DNA of 63,193 nt, counting the filler, from Octopus bimaculoides (lineage: Eukaryota): NCBI RefSeq assembly GCF_001194135.2. It is 8 parts of 7 records of this genome, joined end to end, with 100 filler letters (N's around TTAATTAATTAA, not from the genome) between each part and the next. Parts side by side here need not be neighbours in the genome. Positions count along the whole stretch, not along the records: positions 1 to 18,226 come from NC_068985.1; 7 more parts are not named here. One strand, 5' to 3'. The translations under genes were made by a program, and so were the position numbers. Position 1 is the stretch's first letter. Every line of letters begins with the position of its first letter. This document shows, piece by piece, positions 1 to 18,226 of this stretch. The notes under the pieces are model-generated. The model was not told the origin of the DNA, searched no databases, and saw only the letters and a list, made by a program, of their open reading frames with translations.

Positions 1-196
1 TGGGTTTCTCATTTATATATAGCCAGAACCTGAAGACCTTAAAGGAAAAACTACGAAGGGGAGAGAGAGAGGATGGAGGGGTAGACAGAGGCATGGCGGG
101 AGAAAAGATCATCATCATCATCATATATATATATAAAGAGAGAGAGAGAGAGAGAGAGGGGGGACCAGTCAAGCAGCACATCACGCTGTAATTCTT

Positions 197-234
<38 letters not shown>

Positions 235-544
235 GTGTCTGCTTACATCGAATCAAGCCAGCCAGTATACTGAGACCATTCTATGATACCATTTAAAAGT
301 ATGTCTTCATTGAGCCTGTTTAGAATTGGATCTTGGATAGTTATTGACAGAAAATTCCAGGATAGGTAGGGTAGTTGCCATCATTATCATTACTATCATT
401 ACTTTTCTTTTCATTAACATTATCATCATTTTAATTATTGTTGTTACCGTTTTTAGTTCTGTGTTTTCTTTCCACCCTAAAAACAGTTATGATGTGGAAC
501 TTACATAAAACTACATTTGAAAACCAATGACCTGTGATATTTAA

Positions 545-766
545 CCCTTTAGCATTCAGATTACAAAATGAATAAATGCTTATTTATTCACTTTGTTTTA
601 AATTTATCATTCATTATCTCATAGCTTTAAGCTTTTGATGATGTGATTGTGTATTTTGTATTTTTAGAATGACATTATAGGGTACATGTGAGATATCAGG
701 TCTGTCTGGTCTGGATATAAAACAGGTATATTTGGGCTGGATATTACTGGTTTAAAAGCTAAAGGG
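545..766. mobile_element. Non-autonomous MITE with TTAA target-site duplication (piggyBac-type termini)
   Basis: TTAA(541-544)-CCCTTTAGC ... GCTAAAGGG-TTAA(767-770). A second copy starts at 16841 and loses its right end at about 17040 to a SINE. Confidence 0.8.
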
Positions 767-880
767 TTAATAGATGTAAATCTAAGTATTGATTTATTGT
801 ATTCCTTCATTTATTTGATTCATTGATGTTATGTAAACAAATCTAATTGATGCTACCATACACTGTTTGCTGCTTCACAG

Positions 881-1072
881 GAAGATGGTCCTTTGACAAA
901 ACATGAATTGATATTCCAATATGCTTTCCAGTATGCAATTACTGTTTTGAGTATTGCATGCCCCTGTGCTCTGGGTTTGGCCACACCCACTGCTGTAATG
1001 GTCGGTACAGGGGTTGGTGCCACTAATGGCATTCTCATCAAAGGCGGTGAACCTCTGGAACTGACACATAAG
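881..1072 (+). CDS. ATP7: Cu-transporting P1B-ATPase exon, TM6/CPC (canonical version): [64 protein letters not shown]
   Basis: Acceptor ttcacag|GAA, donor AAG|gtaaga; 192 nt, phase 0/0. CPC motif and [14 protein letters not shown] are typical of ATP7A/B. Confidence 0.96.
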
Positions 1073-1925
1073 GTAAGATCTAGGGAACAGTCAGCAAGGT
1101 TTACAGAAAAGTGTTCTTTGTTAATGCTTCTCTTGGGAGATGTTCTTTGTGTTGTTTTTATATTGACAAATTTCTTTGCTTTCTTGACACTGAATTTTTT
1201 CACTTGCAGATACATCTACTTTTCTTTCAAGGTACAAACATTGTCTTTGTATGTGTATCTATGTATACATATAGGTCCATGGACTACATATATCATAGGT
1301 CATAGATATCAGATGGTCAACACATTTTTACTGATTTGAGAATATTTGGACAGCTTTAGTAATGTGATAGTCTTTTAAAATTATGGTTCAAAATTCTTAT
1401 TTAGATCAGGATGGGGATTCTGCATACTCACAGGCTGAAGTTGTTTGGCAACATTGGAAAACAACAGGTTCTTTTGCTACTTGTTGCATTGATTTTACTT
1501 GAAGTAGGATTTAACAATAGTATCACAGTATCAAAAGATTTGTCTGTTCAGTGCTTCCTACAACAATGAAATATAACTGATATCAAATTTATTTTGAAGT
1601 AATTAAAGAAGTGTGAATGTTGCAGATATTGTAGCCCCATTTGTATCCCATAGCTGTTATCTGGATATAACAGTTGGATATCTGCTGCTGCTAATAATAA
1701 TGTATATAAACAAGTCTTTTGTACAGCTTCTGGATATCTGTGTAAGACTACTTGTAGAGTTTTTGATGAACTAATATCTATCTCTTGGTTGTTTACAGGT
1801 GGATTAAACTGAAATACCAACAATTATCTGGTCTTTGATACTTGCTAGTACCTCTTCTCAGGCAAATATATTGCATTAAGACTGAAAAGAATTTTAAACA
1901 TGTATGTTTCTTACTTCATCTTCAG

Positions 1926-2117
1926 GCTTATGGTACTTGGCATTATCTTCGTGTGGTATTTACAGCTGCTGTCCAATACTCACTCACAGTTTTAACAGTG
2001 GCTTGTCCATGTGGTCTTGGTCTTGCCACACCCACAGCCATTGTTGTAAGTCTTGGGGTAGGCAGCAGTATTGGCCTTCTTATCAAAGGTGGGATTCCTT
2101 TAGAAAATATATCAAAG
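1926..2117 (+). CDS. ATP7: Duplicated alternative TM6/CPC exon of the same ATPase: [64 protein letters not shown]
   Basis: Acceptor catcttcag|GCT, donor AAG|gtaaga; 192 nt, phase 0/0, no stops, ungapped alignment to 881-1072 with 34/64 aa identical. Expression not demonstrated. Confidence 0.85.
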
Positions 2118-4684
2118 GTAAGATGGTCAGTACAGCATAACCAGGCGCTGAGTTCATGATATACCTCTGGTAATGGGCTTACACCATTTTCTTTTGCTAT
2201 GGTGATTAAAGTTGCCTACCCTTTGCTCTCCCCCTAATCTCCTTTTGAACAAACTGGAGTCTTTAATCCCATCAGCTACATTTTATTTTTAAAGCTTTCT
2301 AGTGTTCCAGCACCTTTTAAGAGAGAAAAAAAAGAACTGTTTCTTATTTACGCCACTGGTCAGATTTGGGTTTAGGAATTCTTCTTTAGCTTATTTATAA
2401 TTGTTTTTTTTTTTTCATTCAAAGCTTTTATAAAATGTTTGTATATTGAAGGTGAAAGTTACTGATGTTTCTGTCAGTGATATATTTGTCATGAAGGTAT
2501 ATTGTTATATAATTGATAATTAATTTTAACTTGATGATTTTTACCATAAATTCATATTAAAAAAATTTTTTGTTTGAAAAATTAAATAACTCACAATCAG
2601 TGTTGTATTATTAATAATAATAATAAAATGACCCCAATATTGTAACTAAGATAGAAAGATGATGTTAATAAAATGCCTTTATTTTTTTCATGGGATAGTG
2701 GTAACAAAATTGGTAGAGTGACAAGTAATATACCTTGTGTTTAGTACTGTGCTTTGGGGTTTTGAGTTCAGATCTTGTCAAAGTCAAGAACAAAGTACCA
2801 GTCAAGTATTCGGACTGATAAAAAAAAATCCATTGGTTCTTCCCTACCTAAATTTCTGGCCTTGCATCTATATAGGAAATCATAAATGTGTCATTTAAGA
2901 GTAACAGTAGGGAAAAAACAGTTGAGTGCCTTACAGAGCTAGGCTTATTTTTAATCCACTTTTTCATGCTTGCATGGGGTAGATGAATATATTTTTGAGG
3001 CACTGTTTTACAATTTGATGCTCTTCCTGTCTCTCACCCTTGCCTGTTTTTCAAGTAAGGGACCATTTATTCTACATGTCTTCAAAGGTGAACAAGGGAA
3101 ATCGCACGAACATTACTGTTTGTTACTTAGTAATTTTTATGGAAGAGCAAATGTAAACAGAGACCTCCACACACTCTAAATAGATTTCTGCCAGTTTTGT
3201 CGATAAGTATTCAGTTTGATTTACAGAACTAGCTACAAATGTATTAGTGTGTAAGTGGTTGAATATTCTACAGGCACATGTAAGCCTCAACATATTTATT
3301 ATCTGACAAAATTAGTGTGATATTCTGTAATGAGACTGGATCTTTAAATCACAAGTGCAGTCCATCTAATGAGCTTCCATCTGCACAATTTCACTCATGA
3401 GGCTTGAGGTGATCCAATACTATGGTAAATGTGACTTGTTCTATATGCTATGACATTGGATCGAACCTAGTAACTTGTGATTACAAAGTGAAGTTTTTAA
3501 CCATTTTGCCATGTTGTATTCATTCATTCATTCACACAATCACACACACGTGTGTGTGTGTAAGAAATATTGGTATTTACATGGCCCTGTCAAGTGACCT
3601 GGTATGATCACACAGTTCCTTGGATAAGTGTATGGCTCAGGTTTCACTCAAGCTTTGTTCTTGACATTCAACTTGGAAGCATATCAGGTTGTTTGAAATG
3701 GTCATTAAGTAATAGCTTTAATCTGTTGCCCAGTTTAATACCACCAGTTCTCTCTTTATTGAGTTCAGCAAAGTTCTCTCTATTGCAAGCATTTGAATCA
3801 AGTTTCTGGTCTGAGAAACGATCATATAATTGCTGTTTCATCATTTCTTTATTTCCCCTCCTCCTTTGTCACTCATGGATGCACTGCATAAAGAGATGAA
3901 TGAATGCACTGCTGGAACATGCGATAAGAAGAGACAATGGTTGAAGTAAGAAAGTTATATATTTAATCAGTAAGGTGTTCTGTTAGAGAGTGGAAAATTA
4001 AAGAAAATGCTGTCTCTTCCTTCTCTGTTAAGGCATATTGATTTTTAAAGAAAAGTGGTTGGGATGTAAGGCAGAATCAATTGGGTGGGATTTGAACTCA
4101 GAGCATAAAAGAAGATAACTAAATTTTACAAGGTGTTTAATCCTATGCATTACTAACTCTTTCATACATTATTTGAGAAGAATACTGAATATTGTTGTAT
4201 TGAAATTTATGAAATTTTATCAGTTGTAGCAGTAATATGTTTTGTAATAAAAATTCTAAAGGTTTTAATTAAACTGCTATTTTCTAATTATATTATTGAA
4301 TTTGTGTGGGTTACATTAATGCATTGTTACATTGCTCATATTAGTAAATGTAGCAATAATATTAGTAGATATGTAAGTTACTAGAATTGTGGATTATTTT
4401 TGTGGGTAGGATAGCGTTACTTTGCTCTATTAATAGCTATGTAAACATATTGATATATAGATAATATTAGTACATATATGAGGGTCACATTGTTAGATAT
4501 GTAGGTCATATAAGTGTGTGTATGTGTACATACATATATATATAGTAATAATTTTATATTTGGTTATACACCATGTAGTATGTTGTTTAAAGCCTGTTCA
4601 CAGTATTTGGTTACCTGATATCAACAACTGTATGGAGGTATTTGCCACTGGATTTACTTCAGGAATTCCAGTGCCCATAGAGTT

Positions 4685-4888
4685 TATAAAAATATGAAAA
4701 GAAAATGGAATTCACAAGACTCTTTATTATTCACTACAATTGGTTCAACTCATTGTGCACCAGTGCCTATGATGCATGCAACTGTTTGTACAGCATCTCA
4801 AGCCATGAGGCACCATTGCATGATGGGTCAAAATGATCGTAGTGAATAATAGTCTCATGGATTCCATTTTCTTTCTCTCATATTTATA
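4685..4888. mobile_element. MITE-like element with about 55-bp imperfect terminal inverted repeats
   Basis: 4685-4740 (tataaaaatatgaaaagaaaatggaattcacaagac...attattcactacaat) is near the reverse complement of 4836-4888; TA-rich ends. Confidence 0.65.
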
Positions 4889-5038
4889 CCTCAACCCATA
4901 TATATATAAAGTGGGTCACATTAATAGATATATAGGTCCTCCCCTTGTAAATATGCATATCACATTGGTAGATATATAAACCATTTTAGTTTAACATGTT
5001 GCACTTATTCAAACCATGTTTACTCTTATTTTTGATAG

Positions 5039-5221
5039 GTCAAGAACATCGTGTTTGACAAAACTGGCACCATCACTCATGGAATACCCCGTGTGGCAAG
5101 AATCTGTACTTTTGTTGAGAGTCATGTGTGTTCATTTGTGAAGCTACTTGCTATTGCAGGAACTGCAGAGACCAGCAGTGAACACCCAATTGCTGCAGCG
5201 ATTGTGAAATATGCCAAACAG
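5039..5221 (+). CDS. ATP7: ATP7 exon: phosphorylation motif DKTGT and N-domain SEHP ([15 protein letters not shown]...[16 protein letters not shown])
   Basis: Acceptor tttgatag|GTC, donor CAG|gtaatt; 183 nt, phase 0/0; DKTGT and SEHP are hallmark P1B motifs. Confidence 0.97.
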
Positions 5222-5482
5222 GTAATTTTTTTTTATAGAATATACTTTGATAAATCTGTAGATCATCTTGACATGTTCAGTGTGGTCCTCTAATATGGAG
5301 CTGTTCATTACAAGGTATGTAGATCATCTTAACACTAACAACAAACATATACTATAAGTAACTATTACTACAACTATTCTTTTACTGATTGACTGTGGCC
5401 ATGGGTTTCACAATAAAAAATATACTCAGGCTCCCTGACAGTTATAAAACCATGATTTCCTGTGTGAATGGTAGTGGGGGAG

Positions 5483-5515
<33 letters not shown>

Positions 5516-5559
5516 ACTACTACTACTACTACCACTACCACCACCACCAATAATAATAA

Positions 5560-6000
5560 TCCTTTTTACTATAGGCACAAGGCCTGAAATTTTGGGGAGG
5601 GGGATAATCGATTACATCGACTCCAGTACTCAGCTGGTACTTATTTTATTGACCCCGAAAGAATGAAGGATAAAGTTGATCCCAATGGAGTTTGAATTCA
5701 GAATGTAAGGATGGACAAAATGCTGCTAAGCATTTTTCCTGGCACATTTATGATTCTGCCAGCTTGCTGTCATACTACTACTAATAATAATAATAATTCT
5801 TTCTACTAAAGGCACAAAGCTTGAGATTTGTGGGGAGGGGACTAGTCGATTACATTGACCTCAGTGTTTCATTGGTACTTAATTTATTGACCCCAAAAGG
5901 TTTGATCTTGGCGGAGTTTGAACTTAGAACATGAAGATAGAAGAAATGCCGCAAAGCATTTTGCCTGGCATGCTAACAATTCTGCCAGCTTGCCGCCTTA
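5560..6000 (-). mobile_element. Two head-to-tail copies of tRNA-derived SINE family 1 with (ATT)n tails
   Basis: Both match the gacccc-gaaag-gatgaa...aaagtcgac...gaactcagaac...gccagctcgccgcc pattern seen at 27661-27832, with many CG>TG/CA changes; separated by (TAA)n. Confidence 0.75.
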
Positions 6001-6203
6001 CTGCTGCTGCTGCTAATAATAATAATAATGCTATTTTTCTATGTAGCTTTTAGAAGCATAGATTAAATAACTTGATGAAGTATTGGTTCCTGACTTTTTT
6101 GACAAATTTTGACTGACGTATGTTGTTCTTCCAAATTTCTGTCTTAAACTAGTGAAGATGCTGGTAGTAGCAACTCTTGGAAGTATTCATGATGAATGCC
6201 ATG

Positions 6204-6533
6204 TTATCCTTTACAATACCACCCTATGGTGTTTGTGGATCTTGATATACAGACACAGAATTTCTGAGTAGATAGATAGGGTAGGGGCTGCTGGGTGTAT
6301 GTTTCTGGTTGTAGAATATGTTGCAGGAAGGGATATTGTCCAGACAAGAAGGTATGTTGAATGTGGGTGTGGTGAAAAAATTTATTATATTTATGTGTCA
6401 GAGGGAAATGTTGCTTTAGTAGAGCTAGAATATATTTGGTTGTGTTTATGGTACTGTCCAAGTTGTATAATAGATTAAACCAGAGTACCTTACTTTTCTT
6501 GTTTCTACTCAGTGGGTAATAAACTGGTGCCAT
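6204..6533 (-). mobile_element. Degenerate Penelope-like element fragment (region C-terminal to RT)
   Basis: Translation KVLWFNLLYNLDSTINTTKYILALLKQHFPLTHKYNKFF resembles the WFNPP.S....TN....FL.L..KHFP segment of invertebrate Penelope-like proteins (recognised from memory). Confidence 0.55.
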
Positions 6534-7351
6534 TCAAGGCAGTTTCTTTTGGCTAGTTCTGAAATCTCCCGGCTTGCCTGCACAAAAGCATTCCTACCTT
6601 ATTTCATGGAGATTGCAGAGTAGTTGCTCTTGATGACCAAAGACTTGGAGTAGGCAGCCCCACCTCTAGATTACAGTCGTTTAGCTACCATCAGCATACA
6701 GCCTATACTACCACAGATGTTCTTATGTTTTGTGGTCATAGTTTTATTCTCTGTATTTTATCTAGCCAATTATATGTAAACTGTGTGGATGTGAAGTTTG
6801 CTCCCCAACTATCTGGTCTTGGGTTCAATCCCACTACATGGCACCTTAGGCAAGTGTCTTTTACTGCAGCCTGGGCTGACTAAAGTCTTTGTGAGTCCAT
6901 TTGGTAGGTAGAATCCTTGTCTAGACATTTCATAATGGTTGTAGGTGGGCATCATTGTCATACAAGCAAGGTTTTTCCTTTCCAGTTTTCCATGGAAAAC
7001 ATGTTTACCTATGGGAAAATATTACCTTACTTGGAAACAGGTGAAGGTTGGTGGCAGGAAGTGGACTTTAAATGATGACAATGTGTAACAGTTACTGCGG
7101 TGCTTTGAAGCTGTATTAACTTTGGGTATCTGTTAATGAGCACTTTATTATACCTCGTGGTAATTACCTATCAATAAAGGCATTATTGACAAAACTATTA
7201 GGATGCTAATCATGTTTGAAAATGTCCATATTAAAACCTTCAATCATAAGTGTGCAACCTGATAAAATAATTTTCTGGATGAGCTATATATATTCACAAA
7301 GGTAAGCACATTTGCCCTTTTAATACATTTTCTTTTTTATTTTTTTTGCAG

Positions 7352-7553
7352 ACTCTTAAAACAGAGATACTTGGCCAAGTGACTGACTTCCTAGCTGTCC
7401 CAGGTTGTGGATTACGTTGTAAAGTTTCCAGAGTTGAGTCATTGTTGTCCAGCATTGATATTGAAGGTGTTCACAACCGTAGAAATATGGCTGGTAGCCA
7501 AAGGGTTAAAATTGATAACATTCTTGGTTTGGAAGACAGTCCAATAATTGAAA
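7352..7553 (+). CDS. ATP7: ATP7 exon: N-domain (TLKTEILGQVTDFLAVPGCGLRCKV...SPIIE)
   Basis: Acceptor ttttgcag|ACT, donor GAA A|gtaagt; 202 nt, phase 0/1; VPGCG motif. Confidence 0.94.
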
Positions 7554-8756
7554 GTAAGTTTTTGTTTATTTTGTCCATTTTATTTTTTTATAATTGATTT
7601 CTTTTTTCTGTTTTGTTTAGCTTCTATTTTTCTATTTTCCATTCTACTTTATATTATCAGGAGATTGGATGGATATTTTAGAAATAATTGATGGAGCAAT
7701 TATTTTATATCTGTATATCATTACTGTATTCACAGCCTGACTGCAAAATGACTATCTTAGCTTGATTTTTGTTCTTTTTAATCACTTTCTATTCATTTTA
7801 ATCAAAGTTGGCTTATCTGATCTGAGTAATATGCCTACCCTGACAATATAATGGGGTGTTTCTGATATAGTTTTGACCAATGATCTACAAGTGACTCTAA
7901 TATTTCTCCCACATTTGCTTCGTTGTCATAAATGTCACAACCTTGTATATTCCCTCCACTGCCTAAACTTTAGGTTATATGTATCCTATGAAAAGAAATC
8001 AGTATGAGTTAGCAGTGAGCAATGAAGACACAGACTAAGATTATTCTTCTCGAACACACAGTTTAGTAACTATCTATCACTAATAACACTGTTTAACACA
8101 ATTTTTGTCCTTGGGTAGCAGCTGTTATTTCCTGTTTGCTTACTCCTGGAAAGTATGAAAACTGGCTAATATTTCCTTCAAACTTTGCTTGTGTTACATT
8201 TTTTCCAAACCCCCAAAACATTCCTCTCAACACATGGTTGTGATGCTCCCCCTCTATTCCTGGCCAAGATCAGAGATGCACATATTATCAGCCACTAAGG
8301 GACATGCTCAAGTGGTTAAGCTCAGGCAACTGACAAGCAAAATCTGTGGTATTGAGAAGAATATTTGCTATAATGATATTTCTGCTTCCGTAACTCAGTG
8401 CTGAATCTGTTTGAAATGTAATGGGAAATAGGTTAATTTCAAAATGTTGATGTGCAGGTCACAAAATCCAAGTTTGAAGGAAATAGTAGTCATTTCCTTT
8501 GATTTCTAGATAGAAGCAAATAGGAGATAACACTTACTGACCAAAGACAAAAAAAAAAAAAAAATTGTTACACAATATTATCAAAGACATTCCAGCAGTG
8601 ATCATCCTAACTTTTTTTCAGGCAGAGTATAGATTGACCAACAGTATTCATTTCATTGTGTTTCTAAGGTGGTAGTATGCAATATGAGGGTGATTTGGCT
8701 GCTATTTCTAGCTGGTTGACCATGCCTATCATGTGTTTCAATATTTGTTTATTTAG

Positions 8757-8918
8757 GTATGGAAGCTGTTGGTGCTACAGCATCTCAAACCTATGATGTA
8801 TTCATTGGTAACCGTGAATGGATGCGACGCAATGGACTAGAGATCACTCATAAAATTAACAACAGTATGGAAGAACACGAGGAACAAGGTCACACAGTGG
8901 TGCTTTGTGCTATTGATG
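8757..8918 (+). CDS. ATP7: ATP7 exon: N-domain (SMEAVG...VFIGNREWMRRNG...EEQGHTVVLCAID)
   Basis: Acceptor atttag|GT completes the codon A|GT; donor GAT G|gtaggt; 162 nt, phase 1/1; IGNREWM motif. Confidence 0.95.
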
Positions 8919-9603
8919 GTAGGTTCCTTAATCCTATTGATACCAAATCATCTAAGACCACTTCTGGTTTTGTTTTAACAATTCTACTAATTTCCAAATG
9001 CTCATATTTAAATTGTGACTTTCTGTTACAATGAATGTTTTTAACTATTTGATACTAAATTGCTCCAAATTCTTGATTAAAAATAAAAATCAACTGAAAT
9101 AGTTTGATAATGTATTTCAGTAGAAACATGGTAAAAGAAAGGGTAATATTTTCTACTTATTTGAAATATTTACATATCTTTTAATTTTCAAAGTTACTGC
9201 TCCTCTGTTTCTCATTGATTGGAATATTATTTCTTAGTTTCCTTTTAGAGCCATCAACTTAAAAGCAATAATTTGGGTAATTCTATATAAGAAATCATTT
9301 CTAGCTTTCTAAAATGTTTTGGCTCTTATATATCTGTCTGTCTGTCTGTTTGTCTAATTTTAAAAATTTAAAATAGGATAAAATCTTTATAAGAATTTAT
9401 CAAGTAGTCAGTGTGAAAAACTCATAAGGGAAAAATTTATAATTATTCCCTTAAAATATATTTATTTACATTAAGGGCATTACTACATGTAAATGCCTTA
9501 CACTATGAGGTACTCTTAAAGTTAAAACTACCATAATAAATACACAGTGTACCGAATGCGAGGAAATGCAACCTTTGAAGCCAACCCTTAAAATCAGATT
9601 CAG

Positions 9604-9663
9604 CTGCAAATCATATGATTTCATAGTTAGTGTACATAATCCACTTTCTAATCGTCAGTGCAG
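9604..9663 (-). ncRNA. Type I hammerhead ribozyme motif
   Basis: Minus strand: CTGCA-CTGACGA-(29-nt stem II region)-GAAA-TCATATGA-T-T-TGCAG. Stem I 5 bp perfect, palindromic stem III ATCATATGAT, NUH triplet AUU. Confidence 0.6.
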
Positions 9664-10111
9664 TCATAATCAAGACACATAAAAATGAACAAAATCAACA
9701 TACCAGATGAACACCAAATGTATCCAGCATAGTACATAGAGATGTTCACTCTTATATATCTATGTAAGAGGCGGGCTTTTCAAATTGCATCTCGGTACAC
9801 GTGTTTATTTAGAATAATTCAGCACTGAATATATTCCGGTTAAATTTAAGATTTAAAATAGGATAAAATCTTTATAAGAATTTATCAAGTAGTCAGCGTG
9901 AAAACCTCATAAGGGAAAAATTTATAATTATTCCCTTTAAATATATTTATTTGCATTAAGGGCATTACTACATGTAAATGCCTTACACTATGAGGTACTC
10001 TTAAAGTCAAAACTACCATAATAAATACACAGTGTACCGAATGCGAGGGAATGCAACCTTGTTGGTTCGTCTGGTATGTTGATTTTGTTCATTTTTGTGT
10101 CTTGATTATGC

Positions 10112-10171
10112 CTGCACTGATGATTAAAAAGTGGATCATGTACACTAACTATGAAATCATATGATTTGCAG
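10112..10171 (+). ncRNA. Type I hammerhead ribozyme motif (inverted copy, sense to ATP7 pre-mRNA)
   Basis: CTGCA(10112)-CTGATGA(10117-10123)-ttaaaaagtggatcatgtacactaactat-GAAA(10153-10156)-TCATATGA-T-T-TGCAG(10171). Confidence 0.6.
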
Positions 10172-10310
10172 CTGAATCTGTTTTTAAGGGTTGGCTTCAA
10201 AGGTTGCATTTGCTTGCGTTTGGTACACTGTGTATTTATTATGGTAGTTTTGACTTTAAGAGTCCCTCATAGTGTGAGGCATTTACGTGTAGTAATGCCC
10301 TTAATGTAAG

Positions 10311-10361
<51 letters not shown>

Positions 10362-10371
10362 ATGTATAGGT

Positions 10372-10543
10372 GCAGGAGTGACCATGTGGTAAGAAACTTG
10401 CTTCCCAACCACATGGTTCCGGGTCCAGTCCCATTGCATGGCACCTTGGGCAAGTATCTTCTACTATCGCCTCAGGCCAAGCAAAGCCTTGTAAGTGGAT
10501 TTGGTAGACAGAAACTGAAAAAAGCCCATTGCATGTATGTATG

Positions 10544-10594
<51 letters not shown>

Positions 10595-10795
10595 TTGTGT
10601 CTGTGTTTGTCCCTCCACCATTGCTTGACAACCGATGTTGGTATGTTTATGTCCCTGTCACTTAGCAGTTCAGCAAAAAGAGACAGATAGTATGAGTACT
10701 AGGCTTACAAAGAATAAGTCCTGGGGTCGACTTGCTCGACTAAAGGCGGTGCTCTAGCATGGCTGCAGTCAAATGACTAAAACAACTAAAAGAAT
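10372..10795 (+). mobile_element. tRNA-derived SINE family 2, near full length with internal (TA)n
   Basis: Head ggagtgaccatgtggtaagaaacttgcttcccaaccacatggttccgggtccagtccc (A/B-box-like), shared with 6790-6915, 11021-11440, 48955-49375 (+) and 15990-16130, 54925-55060, 56905-57058 (-). Confidence 0.8.
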
Positions 10796-11020
10796 ATATA
10801 TATGTTTCTGTTTGGGAGAAGGAGAATTAGTGCCCTTAAACCTTTTCAGCAGGTCTTCTCAGACTGGTCAGATTAACCTTTTTGATACCAACCCACCCTG
10901 GTGCTATGATACAAAATTCATGTTTTAAAATGATTTGAATTAAAAACTTAATCAAAATTTGCTGCTAAGTTACATTTGAAACAAGCTTGATAATGACAAA
11001 AATATTTTAGTAAGTTCTTC

Positions 11021-11440
11021 AGGAGTGCTGTGTGGTAAAAAGATTGCTTCCCAACCACATGGTTCCAAGTTCAGTCTCACTGTGTTACACTTTGAGCAAG
11101 CACCTTCTACTATAGTCTTGGGCTGGCCAAAGCGCTGTGAGTGGATGTGGTAGATGGAAACTGAAAGAAGCTACTTGCATATATCAGCATTTAATGTCTG
11201 CCTTCCATGCTGGCATTGGTGGGACATTTGTGTGTCTATATGTGTATCCCTCTGACTACCACTTGACAACTGGTGTTAATGTGTTTATGTCTCTGTAACT
11301 TTGCAGTTTGGCAAAAGGGACTGGTAGAATAAGTACTAAGCTTTTAAAAAATAAGTCCTGGTATCAATCTGTTTGACTAAAAAATCCCTTGAAGGTGGTG
11401 TTCCAGCATGGCCACAGCCAAAATGACTGAACCAAGTAAA
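11021..11440 (+). mobile_element. tRNA-derived SINE family 2 copy
   Basis: Colinear with 10372-10795 from head to the tail aaatgactgaaccaagtaaaa. Confidence 0.75.
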
Positions 11441-12268
11441 AACATTTTTTAAAATTATTTTAAAAGTTTAACTGAAACAAAGGCAGTGTATTTCAGTAGA
11501 AATATAATAGCAAAAAGGTTAATTCAAAGTTAATAGTGCAATTTATTAGAAGAAGTGCATGAAATGGTTAACAAACAAAAACCTTTTTTTAATTAGAAAA
11601 ATTAAAAAAGAAAGCAAAACGAATTAAAAAAATTATAAATAACTGTTTTACATTCATTTTTCATGGTTTTGTGGGTCGTTTACTAGAGTACTTGTGTTTA
11701 CAACTGAATGCTCTTCTTAGTGCTATTTACTCAAGCAGAGAAATAATGAATGAACTCTGTTGTTTGTTAACCTAGTAAATTGCAACAAGCATTGTCAGGT
11801 ACTTTGTCCCTCAGGGTTACATCAGAATAACAATAAGATATCAACATACAATCATTATGTTGTTCTTATTTAACTGCAGTTCAGCCCTGATGGACCTGAC
11901 ATATAATCAATGTCATACCAGCTATAAGTACTCTGTCTTGTTATGGGTAGGGTAGGATATCCTCTTTTTTAAGATAGTAAGGTATAGGTTGAGTGATATT
12001 TAGTTGTTATTTCTAGCAAGTTGGTTTTTAATTAGTTTTACAGTCACATGAATTGATAAAATGCAACTGATCTGGAAGCACTTATCTCAGGTTGTTTAAT
12101 AAATGTTGATGGTAGACTTAAAGAGATATATAAAACCTGTTTGTTTTGTTTATATTTATTGATGAAAGTTTATTCCTCTCTGGTGCACTCTCTGAAGTTT
12201 GATTTATCAGTGACTGGTATCCCACTATAAATTTACTTAGGATTTGCTTTCTTCTTAACATTTTGCAG

Positions 12269-12411
12269 ATGAGTTGATGGCAATGTTAGCTGTGGCTGAT
12301 ACTGTTAAGAGTGATGCTCATTTAGCTGTCAGCACATTGAAAGACATGGGTCTTGAAGTGATTCTTTTAACTGGAGATAATCAAAAAACTGCGAGAGCAA
12401 TTGCCAAACAG
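12269..12411 (+). CDS. ATP7: ATP7 exon: P-domain ([17 protein letters not shown]...[17 protein letters not shown])
   Basis: Acceptor ttttgcag|AT completes the codon G|AT; donor CAG|gtaagt; 143 nt, phase 1/0; TGDN motif. Missed by the ORF track. Confidence 0.96.
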
Positions 12412-12899
12412 GTAAGTTTATAACAAAGATATTAAATATTTTGTTTTATTAAAAGAATTTTGTTGATTTCTAACTCTCTCCCATCCCATAGAACTACAAA
12501 TTAATAGTTTAGTTGATTAAAATATACTACTTGTATTCATTTGATTAATTTCCAATGTGTAAACCTTTTCTTGATCTTCCTCCTTTATTAATAATTTATT
12601 ACAGTTACTTATTTCCTCTTCTGAAGTCTTTGATTTGCTGCAGTAATATTGGCATGAGAAAAGTGATTTTTATAAGTCACTTATCTTAGAATAAAAGTTT
12701 GTTCTCTTCCCACAGATAATTGTTCACCAACCTAAACAGAATTTCACTTTTTCAAAATATCAAGGGGATAGATTCTTACTAATTTCTGTTGTTGTTAAGT
12801 ATGAGTTAAGTGCAATTACCTTTAGATTTATTCTGCACTTAATCATCAAAAACACTTCCTAAATTCGTTCCTTGTCTCTGAAGACCACATTCTCTGTCA

Positions 12900-13620
12900 T
12901 CTTGTTTACACAGGTGCCAAGTATGAAATTTTCCCCAGTCACTTCGACTCAAAAATATACTGTCTGTGTCCTAACTATCACCTTCAGTCAGTTTGCCAAA
13001 GCACACTGCTTGAGATAGTTCTTTGCAGTAAATTCTTTGCACTTTCTTTCTTCACACATATCTATCCCAACTTATAGATGGCAGTGTGTCCCATGCCCCA
13101 AAAGGTTACCTTTTTAAGTATGTTAACTGTTGCCCTGTCACATCAGCTTTTAAATTTCATGAATGTGAAGACACTTGTAAATTATCAATTTCATTTTTCT
13201 TCCTCTCTGATCATTAGTATGGTTTCAGTGCTGCTAAAGAGCCCGAAGATCTTTCCTACTTCACATGAGTTTCATATGTGCTTGAGATCATCAATTGTTG
13301 TTGCTCTTGGGTCATGTTTGTCATAAGAATTGCCTTGGTCTACACCTATCTATTTCTTGGGCTGGAAGTTTCTTCTCAGACCACTCTATTACAGTATTTG
13401 AGATCAAGAACGTCTCCAACCAACATTCTATTGACTCATTATTTGGTTATATTGCATACTGTTCATTCATCATATCAATGAGCAACCTGCTGTTGCTTCC
13501 ACACAAACTTTCCTGTGCAAATGAAACCATCCTTCACTCCCCAGTAACCTTTCACATACAGACGTCATCATTGTCTACAAGCTGTCTAAATACCTCCTTT
13601 GAGAGATGCAGTACTTTATA
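12900..13620 (-). mobile_element. Highly degenerate R4/Dong-like non-LTR retrotransposon remnant
   Basis: Broken minus-strand frames give RLYVKG..G and VLWQTD.R...HRQ.I, echoing the DRLY..R..GGRG and LWD..IQTD....HR.PDI motifs of this clade; many stops. Confidence 0.35.
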
Positions 13621-13903
13621 GACAAAGGCCTTGAAAGCTTCTTCTGATAGGAACATAATAACCGTGTCTCCTTTAATAACATCAAACAAGTCACAACGTT
13701 CGTCAAAGGTACAGACTTTCAAGAGTACCTTATCAAAACATTACCAATACATACATCAAGTACCCATTACTTTTTTTTTATTTCTATATTTCCTTTAACT
13801 GTAATGTTCACTTCTGTAAGTTCCCCTTACTGCTATATCTGACTTACCCATAAGGTTCACTACGTTTCAATACTTACCTGTAAAACATTTGCTTTCACTT
13901 CAG

Positions 13904-14107
13904 GTTGGCATCACGACTGTATTTGCTGAAGTCCTTCCGTCTCATAAGGTGAAAAAAATCAAACAACTTCAAAAGTCCAACAAAAAAGTTGCTATGGTGG
14001 GTGATGGTGTTAATGATTCACCAGCACTTGCTCAAGCAGATGTTGGAATTGCAATTGGCACAGGAACAGATGTTGCAGTTGAGGCTGCAGATATTGTTTT
14101 AATTCAG
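13904..14107 (+). CDS. ATP7: ATP7 exon: P-domain hinge ([15 protein letters not shown]...[39 protein letters not shown])
   Basis: Acceptor cacttcag|GTT, donor CAG|gttgga; 204 nt, phase 0/0; [10 protein letters not shown] motif. Last ATP7 exon found in the window. Confidence 0.96.
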
Positions 14108-15673
14108 GTTGGATGATCAATTCTTCTTGATTTGTCATTATTGTTTTCTCCTCCTCTTCCTTTCATGGTATATCATCATCATCATCGTCGGAACCAGTGT
14201 TAGCATCAACAATGAAAGTGTTAATGATTAATTAACGAATAATGAATTATTTCAGCAAGTTGGGATACAACTCCAATCTTATGTCCTAATCAGTGAAGCA
14301 TAGATTTAATGGCTTCTGAATGAGAAACAAATCCAGAAATTTGAGGAAGGAATCCACTCAGCTGAATTCACCCTCAAAATCAGTTCTGCTGGAGTTCAAT
14401 GCAGAACAGAAAGATAACTAAATGTTGTTAAACATTTCATCCTCTGCTCTACTAATTCTATTCATTGGTAAAAAGAACATGAGTTTCTGATTTAAGCACA
14501 AGCCCACATATTGGGGTTGGTAGTAGTTACATTGATATAATTGACTCCACGGCTTGATTGTTGCCTTTTGATAATGATTTCTTATGTAGGCTTATTAAAG
14601 CCAGTAATTTGGGGGATGCAATTATTGTTTATGTCAACATTAATATGTGACTAATACTTTATTTTATAAATCTCAGAAAGTGTGAAAAGTAATGTAAAAC
14701 CTTGGTAGGATTTGAGCTCAGAATGTAAAGAGCTGAAATAAATATACATTTCCTCAAAGCTCTAATAATTTTCCCTAAGCTATCATCTTGGTGATGATAA
14801 TGATGATAGTGGCGGCGACTTCCACTATCATCATCGTTGTAATTTAGTTCCAGTTTACATTTTTAATCCATCAAAGTAACGAGCAGAAAGCATACTAAAC
14901 GTGACCTTCCTTGGACTGCATTATCTTCTTCGTGTTTTTAAGATTGTGGAATATGATTCTGAAGGAAATTTGGCTGATATCTTTAGCAAGTCATACACAT
15001 AAACGGCTCTAAACTAACGTTTACACTGATTAGAGACTTAATAGAAGGACAGGAATCGTTTCAAGGGAGGTAATTCACTCACCTCTAAAATGCAATTGTG
15101 AATCATTTCCCTTGATTTAATAATTTTTTTCTTTCTCTTTTTCTTTCTGTGCCAAAAGCTGGAAGTATCTCGAACACAATTTTCTGAAATTGTTTCTTTG
15201 AATTTAGATTATAAAATTGTTACACTGCAAAATTGTATCCGACTTGCTGGTTGCTCTTTATAACTGGATTCCGCTTCTGTCATCAAATTACTGACACAAT
15301 AGACAAGGTGTTTATTTTACCAACATCATTTTGTAGGATGCTTTACAGAGCAAGAGAAAGCCTTCTAATTGTACTCGGTGTCTGTTTAGTCGGTAGAGTA
15401 AGGAAGTAGCAGAAAATAATTTACCTTTGTTTGTAGTAAAGGTATACCGTACAATATCTGGGCTATAAGTGTGATGCTTCATTAGAGGTAACTGAAGTAA
15501 GCCTGTGTTGGTTGCACAATATTAATTTTTCATTTCATCTCATATTAACGTCCACTTTTCCATGTCTGCATGGGTCGGATGGAGTTAATTGAGGCGAATT
15601 TTCTACAGACAGATTCCCTTCTTGTCACCAACCCTTACCTGTTTCTAAGCAAGTTAATATTTGTCCCATGGCT

Positions 15674-15890
15674 AAAGTGGTGAGCTGGCAGAAACGTTAG
15701 CATGCCGGGCGAAATGCTTAGTGGTATTTCGTCTGCTGTTACATTCTGAGTTCAAATTCTGCCAAGGTCAACTTTGCCTTTCATCCTTTTGGGGTTGATA
15801 AGTTTAGTACCAGTTGCATATTGGGGTCGATCTAATCGACTGGCCTCCTCCTCAAAATTTTTGGGCCGTGTGCCTAAAGTAGAAAAGAAT
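15674..15890 (+). mobile_element. tRNA-derived SINE family 1 copy (sense)
   Basis: gtggtgagctggcagaaacgttagcatgccgggcgaaatgcttag...gagttcaaattc (B-box-like)...ctttgcctttcatcc. Confidence 0.8.
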
Positions 15891-16429
15891 GTTCTTGCAG
15901 TTTATTGAAAATAAATGACACTGCTTGTATGGTGTTGACAATCATTTACAAATATGGCACTGTGATATCAAACAAGGTTACACACACACACACAGCAAGC
16001 CGTTTTCAGTTTCCATCCGCCAAATCTATTCACAAGGCTTTGGTCAGCTTGGGGCTCTAACAGAAGACACTTGTCCAAGGTGCCATGAAGTGGGTCTGAA
16101 CTGAAAATCGTGTGGCTGAGAAGCCATGCCTGCTCTTGTATTATTCTGTATGAAATAACGAAATAGAACTAATCTGTGAGCCTTATCATCAATTATGTGC
16201 AGAAAAGACAATTACATTGGTATTGACATATTGAGTGGATGATGAGTGTTCAGCAGTGATAGGTGCCATGTACTAACAGCACAGCACAGATCTGTGTCAG
16301 CAAAGGAAGAATAAAGACACAGTTGGAAAGACCCTTTAACAGTGCAAGATCAAATTTCTTGGTGCATTGTTCTTATGAGTCTATCATTCACTATATTTTA
16401 ATAATAATAATACTAATAATGATAATTAA

Positions 16430-17835
16430 TGGTTTCAAATTTTGACACAAGGCCAGCAATTTCAGGGGAGGGAATAAGTTATTTACATTATCTCAGTGCT
16501 CAACTGGTACTTATTTTATCAACCTTGAAAGGATGAATGGCAAAGTTGACCTTGGTGGAATTTGAAATCAGAATGTAAAGACAAACAAATTGCTGCTAAG
16601 CATTTAGCCCAGCTTGCTCATGATTCTACCAGCTTGGCACCTTAATAATAATGATAATGGTTTCAAATTTTGGTGTAAGGCCAGTAAGTTCAGGAGGTTA
16701 TCAACTCTGAAAGGATTAAAAGGCAAAGTCAACCTCAGCGGAATTTGAACTCAGAACATAAAGATGGACGAAATGTTGCTAAGCATTTTGCCCAGCATGC
16801 TCATGGCTCTGCCAGCTCACCATTTTAATAATTATATTAACCCTTTAGCATTCATGTCATTTTGTCAAAGCTAATGCTTATTTACTCCCATTGTTTTAAA
16901 TTAATCATGCATTATTTTGTAGCCCTGAGATTTTGATGTTAGAATGATCTTGTCGGGTTGGTGTGAGAGGCCAGAGCTGGCCAGTTTGCACATAAAACAA
17001 ATAGAATATTTTAGCCAGATGTGGTCAGTTTAAATGCTAATCTTTTCTACTAAAGGCACAAGGCCTGAAATTCATGGAGAGGAGACTAGTCAATTACATC
17101 GATCCAGTGTCTTACTGGTACTTAATTTATCGACCTTGAAAGGATGAAAGAAAAGTTGACTTTGGCAGAATTTGAAATATAATAATAATCCTTTCCAATA
17201 TAGGCACAAGACCTGCAATTTTGGAGGAAAGGGATAACCAATTATATTGATCCCAATTACTGATTGGTACTTATTTAATCAACCTTGAAAGGATGAAAGA
17301 CTAAGTCAACTTAGGCAGAATTTGAACTCAATGTAAAATCTGAAGAAATGCTACTAAGCTTTTTACCTGGTCTGCTAACAATCCTGTCAGCTTGTTTTGT
17401 TTTTTTTTAAAGGCAGAAGACCAGTATATTTGAGGGGAAGGTGATAGTTGATACCATTGACCCTAGTATTTGACTGGTATTTCATTGACCCTGGAAGATT
17501 GATAGGCAAAGTTGACTTTATCAGGATTTGAGCACAGAACAGAAAGAGCTAGAAGAAATACTGAATAGCAGTTTGTTCACTGCTCTTGTGATTCTTCCAA
17601 TACACTGCCCTAATAATCCTTTCTGTTACAGGCACAAGGCCTGAAACTTGTGAGGAGGGGTAAGTCGATTTCATTGACCCCAGTGCTGCACTAGTACTTA
17701 TTTTATCGACCCCAAAAGAATGAAAGATAAAGTCAACTTCAGTGAAATTTGAACTCAGAACATAAAGACAGATGAAGTACCGTTAACCATTTTTCTCGAT
17801 GTGCTAATGATTCTGCCAGCTCACTGCCCACTACA
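16430..17835 (-). mobile_element. Stack of about six same-orientation SINE family 1 copies, with a TTAA-MITE at 16841-17040
   Basis: Repeated ggcacaaggcctgaa...gaaaggatgaa...aaagt(c/t)gac...gaatttgaactcag units at about 16430, 16665, 17040, 17190, 17410 and 17615, mostly separated by (TAA)n. Confidence 0.75.
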
Positions 17836-17841
17836 TTGTGC

Positions 17842-17873
<32 letters not shown>

Positions 17874-17875
<2 letters not shown>

Positions 17876-18226
17876 TAAATTGATCAATAAAGCCATAACT
17901 GAAGACAGCCGCAGAAAGAAGAAAGGCCTCAGTATGGCCTGGGTGGACTACCAAAAGGCTTTCGACAGTGTTCCCCACACGTGGATTCTGGAAACACTAG
18001 CCATAAACAAGGTGGCACCAATTATCATAAAATACATAGAGCACTCAATGAACAAATGGCAGACAGTGCTACAGCTCCAAACAAAAGAGGGACTTGTGAA
18101 AACGAAAGCCATCCCCATTAGAAGAGGAATATTCCAGGGAGACACGCTCTCTCCACTCCTGTTCTGCCTGGCACTCACACCTCTAACAGAATTGCTAAAT
18201 AGAACTGGATGCGGTTACAAATGCTA
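17874..18226 (+). mobile_element. 5'-truncated R4/Dong-like (RLE) non-LTR retrotransposon, RT fragment
   Basis: Open frame ...LSMAWVDYQKAFDSVPHTWI...IRRGIFQGDTLSPLLFCLAL...; begins directly after (TAA)n at 17842-17873 and runs into the scaffold end. Confidence 0.88.

Follow-up and report, generated by a model that had tools for sequence, protein, structure and literature searches.

Tandem duplication of an exon, with the two copies then used in a mutually exclusive way, is a well known kind of alternative splicing (PMC9013439, PMC9741552, PMC6071210), and splice forms and gene duplicates have been treated as alternative routes to subfunctionalisation (PMC4417111). In the case of exons 7a and 7b of human ATE1, disrupting a long-range pairing shifts the ratio of the isoforms (PMC7797038). 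Homology scans have also identified tandem exons that were missing from annotations, as in the work of Ivanov and Pervouchine 2022 (PMC9013439) and for the copies of SCN-alpha exon 5a/5b (PMC12772994). Here we describe a candidate for such a pair in the copper pump gene ATP7 of Octopus bimaculoides, found in a window of 63,193 nucleotides (nt) that joins parts of assembly GCF_001194135.2, with positions 1 to 18,226 taken from NC_068985.1; all positions given below count along this window. The CPC helix (transmembrane helix 6, TM6; M4 in CopA) is the transmembrane copper site of the pump, and the window holds two exons for it, the canonical exon A and a divergent tandem duplicate, exon B. Exon B is probably a functional alternative of the exon for the CPC helix and the link to the phosphorylation domain, replacing exon A to give a second pump variant.

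The ATP7 pair is like ATE1 7a/7b in that adjacent, homologous exons of equal length sit among long introns with conserved complementary elements, including a long-range pairing. In ATE1, by contrast, both isoforms have been observed and exclusivity is enforced by the competition of two elements for a third; in ATP7 there is one duplex, no competing partner, and no B transcript seen. For ATP7 a competing-structure scheme of the ATE1 type would be a resemblance, not a demonstrated membership. With the cases found by homology scans the pair shares an unannotated homologous exon beside an annotated one, recognised from the sequence and kept in distant species; those cases have RNA-seq support, whereas the octopus exon is known from sequence and belongs to a P1B copper ATPase of coleoid cephalopods. 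Its absence from every cephalopod annotation examined makes it an example of conserved coding sequence overlooked by annotation pipelines. If exon B is used, octopus would, like vertebrates with ATP7A and ATP7B, have two copper pumps of the same architecture and diverged sequence. However, vertebrates duplicated the whole gene, whereas octopus would swap only the 64-residue segment of the CPC helix and hinge and keep the metal-binding and regulatory domains identical. If true, an invertebrate lineage has diversified copper transport by exon duplication, as an exon-level counterpart of the ATP7A/ATP7B split. The first-pass annotation of this DNA, which had proposed the pair, was not aware of another in ATP7, and our full-text literature searches likewise came up with no animal for which duplicated or mutually exclusive ATP7 exons have been reported, and with no such report on cephalopods. 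What is new is a well-supported candidate for a tandem-duplicated alternative exon in a P1B ATPase, with strong evolutionary support.

The exons that matter most for the argument are the following.

881..1072, + strand: exon A, the canonical TM6/CPC exon of ATP7; 192 nt, phase 0/0; in all annotated isoforms
1926..2117, + strand: exon B, the diverged tandem copy of exon A; 192 nt, phase 0/0; unannotated
5039..5221, + strand: exon C, the next constitutive exon, with the catalytic aspartate motif (DKTGT); phase 0; common 3' partner of A or B

The gene is ATP7. The peptide of exon A is identical over 64/64 residues to O. bimaculoides XP_014781705 and also to the ATP7 of O. sinensis and O. vulgaris, the other exons of the window have O. 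bimaculoides ATP7 as their best match in homologue mapping, and the window has 90-95% DNA identity to the O. sinensis ATP7 locus. A search with the concatenated window exons returned only ATP7-type proteins, and the cephalopod ATP7 orthologues were retrieved with a full-length Haliotis protein as query. Between exons A and B lie 853 nt. A pyrimidine-rich tract leads into the acceptor of each (...cttcacag/G for A and ...catcttcag/G for B, the slash marking the exon boundary), and both end in the donor AAG/gtaagat. Their peptides align without gaps over 34/64 identical amino acids (BLASTP E=1e-23) and their nucleotides over 119/192, with 40, 47 and 32 of 64 identities at the three codon positions. 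All of the values on which the first-pass annotation had based the pair (coordinates, 192 nt, phase 0/0, splice sites and 34/64 residues) were reproduced in this comparison. The same is true of its statement that the flanking introns are not similar, their identity of 31-36% over 50-200 nt being at background apart from the shared donor heptamer. The exons are in short adjacent, homologous, equal in length and phase and provided with usable splice sites, and exon C is joined in frame by either one.

Both exons retain an 11-residue motif, LIKGG, the CPC motif and LGLATPTA, and with the in-frame DKTGT exon that follows, each of them shows these features of a P1B-1 TM6/M4 segment. Exon B can be aligned without gaps to the CPC helix in the ATP7B structures from Xenopus (7SI3, residues 962-1014) and human (7XUK, residues 965-1017). 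Exon A matches animal ATP7 proteins at 42-47/64 residues and exon B matches any other ATP7 or CopA at 26-36/64, which identifies exon A as the canonical copy. The differences include sites that are near-invariant among the P1B ATPases retrieved with the concatenated window exons: after the CPC motif exon B has G for A/S, and it has S-L-G for G-T-G (G-L-G in cuttlefish). Exon A keeps both features, exon B lacks them, and the substitutions are kept among B orthologues. Two more changes that touch near-invariant sites are IVV for VMV and G-L-LIKGG-I for G-I-LIKGG-E (GGI for GGE), and close to the end TH is replaced by IS. None of the other ATP7/CopA proteins examined has this combination; GGIPLENISK is one of the peptides unique to exon B. 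If exon B is indeed used, it would offer a natural cassette that alters only the CPC helix and hinge, and with it a ready test of what determines affinity, turnover or release in P1B ATPases.

Conservation of exon B and selection on its protein sequence

Among 1.84 billion representative proteins, scanned exhaustively with HMMER, exactly 2 entries are of the B type, both of them cephalopod open reading frames (ORFs) on unspliced contigs of genomic type that run through exon B into the introns. Exon B peptides from relatives compare with that of the window as follows.

O. sinensis (L008): 64/64 residues
Third octopod (L001/L002): 64/64 residues
Argonauta hians (L004): 59/64 residues; exon A at 35244-35435 and exon B at 36081-36272 of the locus
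Cuttlefish Acanthosepion esculentum (L003, L005-L007): 74-78%

The cuttlefish contigs come from run ERR12945500, which consists of A. esculentum reads according to a preprint. Counting the window, all five species have an exon B of 192 nt with an open frame, an AG acceptor and a GTAAGA donor, and without indels or stops; in Argonauta the intron between A and B is 645 nt long. A single TM6 exon, with no second copy, is present in ATP7 of both the limpet Patella caerulea and the scallop Ylistrum balloti. The scallop exon has the boundaries of the octopus exons and a length of exactly 192 nt, and the limpet match stops at the corresponding point. This distribution suggests that the tandem duplication took place within the cephalopod lineage and predates the split of octopods from decapods. 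That the duplication is old had been proposed from the window, and conservation of exon B with its splice sites across Octopoda and cuttlefish bears this out. The high copper demand of hemocyanin, which had been offered as a rationale, is a weak one: gastropods use hemocyanin too, yet the limpet, the one gastropod covered, lacks the duplicate, and so does the scallop. The nonsynonymous distance (dN) between A and B is 0.41, much above the distance of 0.26 among B copies across coleoids, which suggests rapid change after the duplication in the cephalopod stem, followed by constraint. Outside the molluscs, an ATP7 model of Artemia franciscana (P0332, 1518 residues) contains an identical TM6 segment twice, at residues 780 and 1014; this is probably a duplication of assembly or annotation and not biology.

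Selection was assessed with Nei-Gojobori estimates of dN and of synonymous distance (dS). For exon B, Octopus and Argonauta differ by dN 0.047 and dS 0.36 (ratio 0.13), and Octopus and cuttlefish by dN 0.256 and dS 1.43 (ratio 0.18). Exon A has a ratio of 0.02 between Octopus and Argonauta, and both copies are under purifying selection. Third positions dominate the differences in exon B, with counts of [5,1,15] over the three codon positions for Octopus-Argonauta and [20,8,35] for Octopus-cuttlefish. The nonsynonymous changes number 6.5 against a neutral expectation of 40 in the comparison with Argonauta, and 31 against 90 in that with cuttlefish. At shorter range, the window and the third octopod (L001) differ in exon B at 4 of 192 nt, all synonymous (binomial P about 6e-9), and in exon A at 8, while 14.3% of the aligned intron sites differ and many indels are present.

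Nine differences between A and B are fixed in the B copies of Octopus, Argonauta and cuttlefish (Q13T, A19S, S24T, A30G, V39I, M40V, T43L, I51L and T62I), and position 57 is I in all B copies. Since these B-specific residues are shared across lineages, it is the B sequence itself that has been maintained, without being refreshed from A, and gene conversion is ruled out as the source of the open frame. Judged by these substitution patterns, exon B is under protein-level purifying selection, and has been since at least the octopod-decapod split. The intact second frame had been read as a sign of selection in the first-pass annotation, and the ratios of 0.13-0.18, with no disabling mutations in relatives, agree with that. 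We are highly confident that exon B is a functional coding exon.

Conserved intron flanks and a long-range duplex

Most of the intron sequence cannot be aligned between Octopus and Argonauta. The alignable flanks of exon B extend about 240 nt upstream and 420 nt downstream, compared with about 90 and 260 nt for exon A and about 60-70 nt or less for exons C to G. At a threshold of 62% identity, all remaining conserved islands fall in the stretch from exon A to about 400 nt beyond exon B. The dS of exon B between Octopus and Argonauta is also below that of exon A (0.36 vs 0.64). Extended conservation of the flanks together with synonymous constraint is typically reported for regulated alternative exons. 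The intronic elements considered here are the following.

1729..1925, + strand: conserved islands of the A-B intron (about 1729-1810 and 1877-1925) that precede exon B and take in its acceptor region
2118..2262, + strand: intron segment directly 3' of exon B, presumably a regulator of splicing; about 80% identity to Argonauta (82% over 128 nt)
1200..1242, + strand: duplex arm 1 (island I1), starting 127 nt downstream of the exon A donor
2434..2480, + strand: duplex arm 2 (island I4), starting 316 nt downstream of the exon B donor

The block at 2118-2262 (145 nt) has 99% identity to O. sinensis, and the pairing analysis gave no significant partner for it. It is rich in YGCY and CU motifs (GCGCT, TGCT, TGCC, CTCTCCCCC), which suggests that it holds protein-binding splicing elements.

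The two arms can pair in a duplex of roughly 39 base pairs (bp), which would place exon B within a loop of about 1.2 kb. Of 66 island pairs compared, I1 with I4 is the sole outlier. In O. sinensis this pair reaches -49.9 kcal/mol (z = -5.3 and -8.0 in two shuffle runs) and in Argonauta -32.8 kcal/mol (z about -3, with -2.8 in the comparison of island pairs), and the arms of the window, joined by a GAAA linker, reach -41.3 kcal/mol (z = -7.07, with 0/200 shuffles as stable). Both arms are single-copy in the loci, and each is the best partner of the other within 5-6 kb of pre-mRNA in Octopus and in Argonauta, by a clear margin in the former (-33.5 vs -21 to -26) and a marginal one in the latter (-25.8 vs -22.6 and -24.9). 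The helix, for which the comparison covers octopods, is recovered by RNAalifold on four of them. Of the cells in the 34 pairs counted, 94.9% are able to pair; sliding the partner lowers this to 37-52%. The Argonauta helix has 2 compensatory changes and 4 compatible one-sided changes, and 7/34 pairs are broken. The first-pass annotation had seen no docking or selector pairing by eye and had missed this one conserved duplex; no second partner stands out in either species. It is possible, though on our assessment less likely than not, that the duplex regulates exon choice; it would in any case supply a testable model, for a clade without model organisms, in which RNA structure governs which exon is used.

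Looking for a second partner of each arm turned up only candidates at background level. The second-best predicted partner of arm 1 in O. sinensis (L008 75226-75285, -26.2 kcal/mol) lies upstream of what the window covers, about 270 nt past the upstream exon. If real, this pairing would loop out exon A and could be the missing competing structure; no conserved island is found there in Argonauta. An apparent pairing of exon A with sequence preceding exon B, at z about -3 and -2.2, was dropped, the segments not being orthologous between Octopus and Argonauta. The first bases of exon A (881-890, GAAGATGG) are complementary to the acceptor tract of exon B (1915-1925, CCATCTTC/TCATCTTC), and this holds in Argonauta through a G-U pair; at 8 bp only, it may be due to chance. 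Arm 1 itself (1203-1240) contains a 22-nt stretch with a good acceptor and a donor-like site, TTGCAG/ATACATCTACTTTTCTTTCAAG/GTACAAAC, of which the AG and the GT are conserved in Argonauta. The stretch could act as a decoy or as a poison micro-exon, since a length of 22 nt breaks the frame, or it could bind U1 and be masked by the duplex.

Use of exon B and alternative explanations

All 8 full-length Octopus ATP7 proteins carry exon A (O. bimaculoides X1-X4, O. sinensis X1-X2 and two O. vulgaris models, which form one 90%-identity cluster), and the models from Argonauta hians and Acanthosepion pharaonis have exon A only. In two decapodiform clusters derived from transcriptomes, every TM6-spanning member listed has exon A, the listed sequences having been seen on about 80 contigs. 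Neither a B form nor a form with both A and B occurs among the annotated isoforms and transcriptome-derived proteins retrieved, which are protein-level data. As every retrieved isoform or protein carries A, never B and never both, exon A is the default in the material sampled so far.

Mutual exclusivity had been proposed for the pair with the caution that neither nonsense-mediated decay nor steric exclusion would enforce it. The caution is borne out by the length of the intron (853 nt, and 645 nt in Argonauta) and by the frame, both exons being multiples of 3; the splice-site type is no barrier either, since both exons have GTAAG donors and AG acceptors. The proposal itself stands as a candidate reading: exon B is under selection and has intact splice sites, and all retrieved isoforms have exon A only. 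The TM6 motifs have been preserved by selection, which implies that exon B must serve as a TM6, and a pump with two copies of TM6 or none would have neither a normal topology nor a normal copper site, so B must replace A. Along this line of argument it is likely that exon B substitutes for exon A. The junctions predicted for the different outcomes are listed here, with U for the upstream exon, the end of which was taken from O. sinensis.

U to B: GATTGACAAAAGTTTTAAG joined to GCTTATGGTACTTGGCATT
B to C: TTTAGAAAATATATCAAAG joined to GTCAAGAACATCGTGTTTG
A to B (double inclusion): GGAACTGACACATAAG joined to GCTTATGGTACTTGG
U to C (double skip): AAAAGTTTTAAG joined to GTCAAGAACATCG

Looking at the possible problems with substitution of A by B, several points weigh against it. 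We found no transcript or annotated isoform with exon B. The cuttlefish contigs stop short of exon A, and the tandem arrangement in cuttlefish is assumed. The changes at near-invariant sites (T to L in GTG, and A/S to G after CPC) mean that exon B may lack normal catalytic competence. The covariation support for the duplex is weak, with 41/500 shuffles reaching the observed score, four sequences of which three are close, and the 7/34 broken pairs in Argonauta. Finally, a search in Octopus and Argonauta found no element that forces skipping of exon A and no second selector competing for either arm.

These points leave room for other explanations. Exon B could be translated and selected without being strictly either/or with exon A, and joint inclusion or combination with other events would then give a regulatory or dominant-negative protein. 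With both exons multiples of 3, an intron of 853 nt and U2-type GTAAGA donors on both, nothing obvious bars double inclusion, and the lack of a mechanism for skipping exon A and the unusual substitutions at near-invariant positions fit this as well. We nevertheless consider it unlikely, since selection has kept exactly the catalytic TM6 motifs and the helix length, which a mere disruptor would not need, and a duplicated TM6 would, by the established textbook topology of P-type ATPases, invert everything downstream. It could also be that exon B owes its conservation chiefly to a role as RNA, for instance that of a decoy exon or a structured splicing regulator of the ATP7 pre-mRNA, and that its coding look is secondary. 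Its synonymous divergence is below that of exon A by both measures given above (dS, and 4 vs 8 differences to the third octopod), its 3' half has 93-97% nucleotide identity to Argonauta and is followed by the 145-nt intron block at 80%, and no B-containing transcript was found. The comparison with cuttlefish makes this quite improbable. There the synonymous sites are saturated (dS 1.4), dN is 0.26, the differences follow the codon periodicity of [20,8,35], and frame, length and motifs are intact, all of which is constraint at the protein level. RNA-level constraint can moreover coexist with coding, as is usual for alternative exons.

That exon B is a non-functional pseudo-exon, open by chance or by gene conversion from A, we regard as very improbable. 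Its absence from all annotations and transcript assemblies examined would suit such a status, as would its being the more divergent copy by the matches to other ATP7/CopA proteins. However, its dN/dS stays far from 1 across the octopod-decapod divergence, no indels or stops have entered the exon in five species, and its splice sites are kept in relatives while the introns around them are unalignable or 14% diverged. The B-specific residues common to all lineages are the opposite of what gene conversion would produce.

Returning to a second pump variant made by replacing A with B, the history could be as follows. A tandem exon duplication in the cephalopod lineage, before the octopod-decapod split, would have been followed by fast divergence and then purifying selection. 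Workable products would carry A or B only, as having both would double the helix and having neither would lose the copper site. The B variant would differ at the nine fixed positions, in and around the ion pathway and hinge, and may differ biochemically from the A pump. Splicing would use exon A by default, with the duplex probably looping out exon B and drawing the exon A donor towards exon C; an element that favours A-C splicing in this way fits exon A as the default. Exon B would be included only where the duplex is opened or where factors bind its conserved surroundings, which would be limited to a particular tissue, stage or condition. Taken as a whole, the proposal that coleoid ATP7 gives two biochemically distinct copper pumps by swapping the CPC helix and hinge, with the choice set by the duplex and the B pump made in a tissue, stage or condition missed by annotations, seems to us slightly less than evenly balanced.

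Other features of the window

The exons downstream of exon C were placed by mapping ATP7 homologues onto the window, and encode the N and P domains.

7352-7553, + strand: exon D, constitutive ATP7
8757-8918, + strand: exon E, constitutive ATP7
12269-12411, + strand: exon F, constitutive ATP7
13904-14107, + strand: exon G, constitutive ATP7

The same mapping detected no exon in positions 1-880 and none past 14107. Downstream of exon G, an ORF at 17838-18226 has a reverse transcriptase domain (Pfam RVT_1, E=6.9e-10) and is a retroelement fragment truncated by the edge of the piece. Two near-identical short ORFs lie on opposite strands at 9466-9624 (minus) and 10151-10309 (plus), in the regions 9355-10330 and 10240-10700, where BLAST against the O. 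sinensis locus also gives inverted matches. An inverted repeat of a mobile element is thereby indicated in the intron between exons E and F, beside long (TATG/TACA)n microsatellites.

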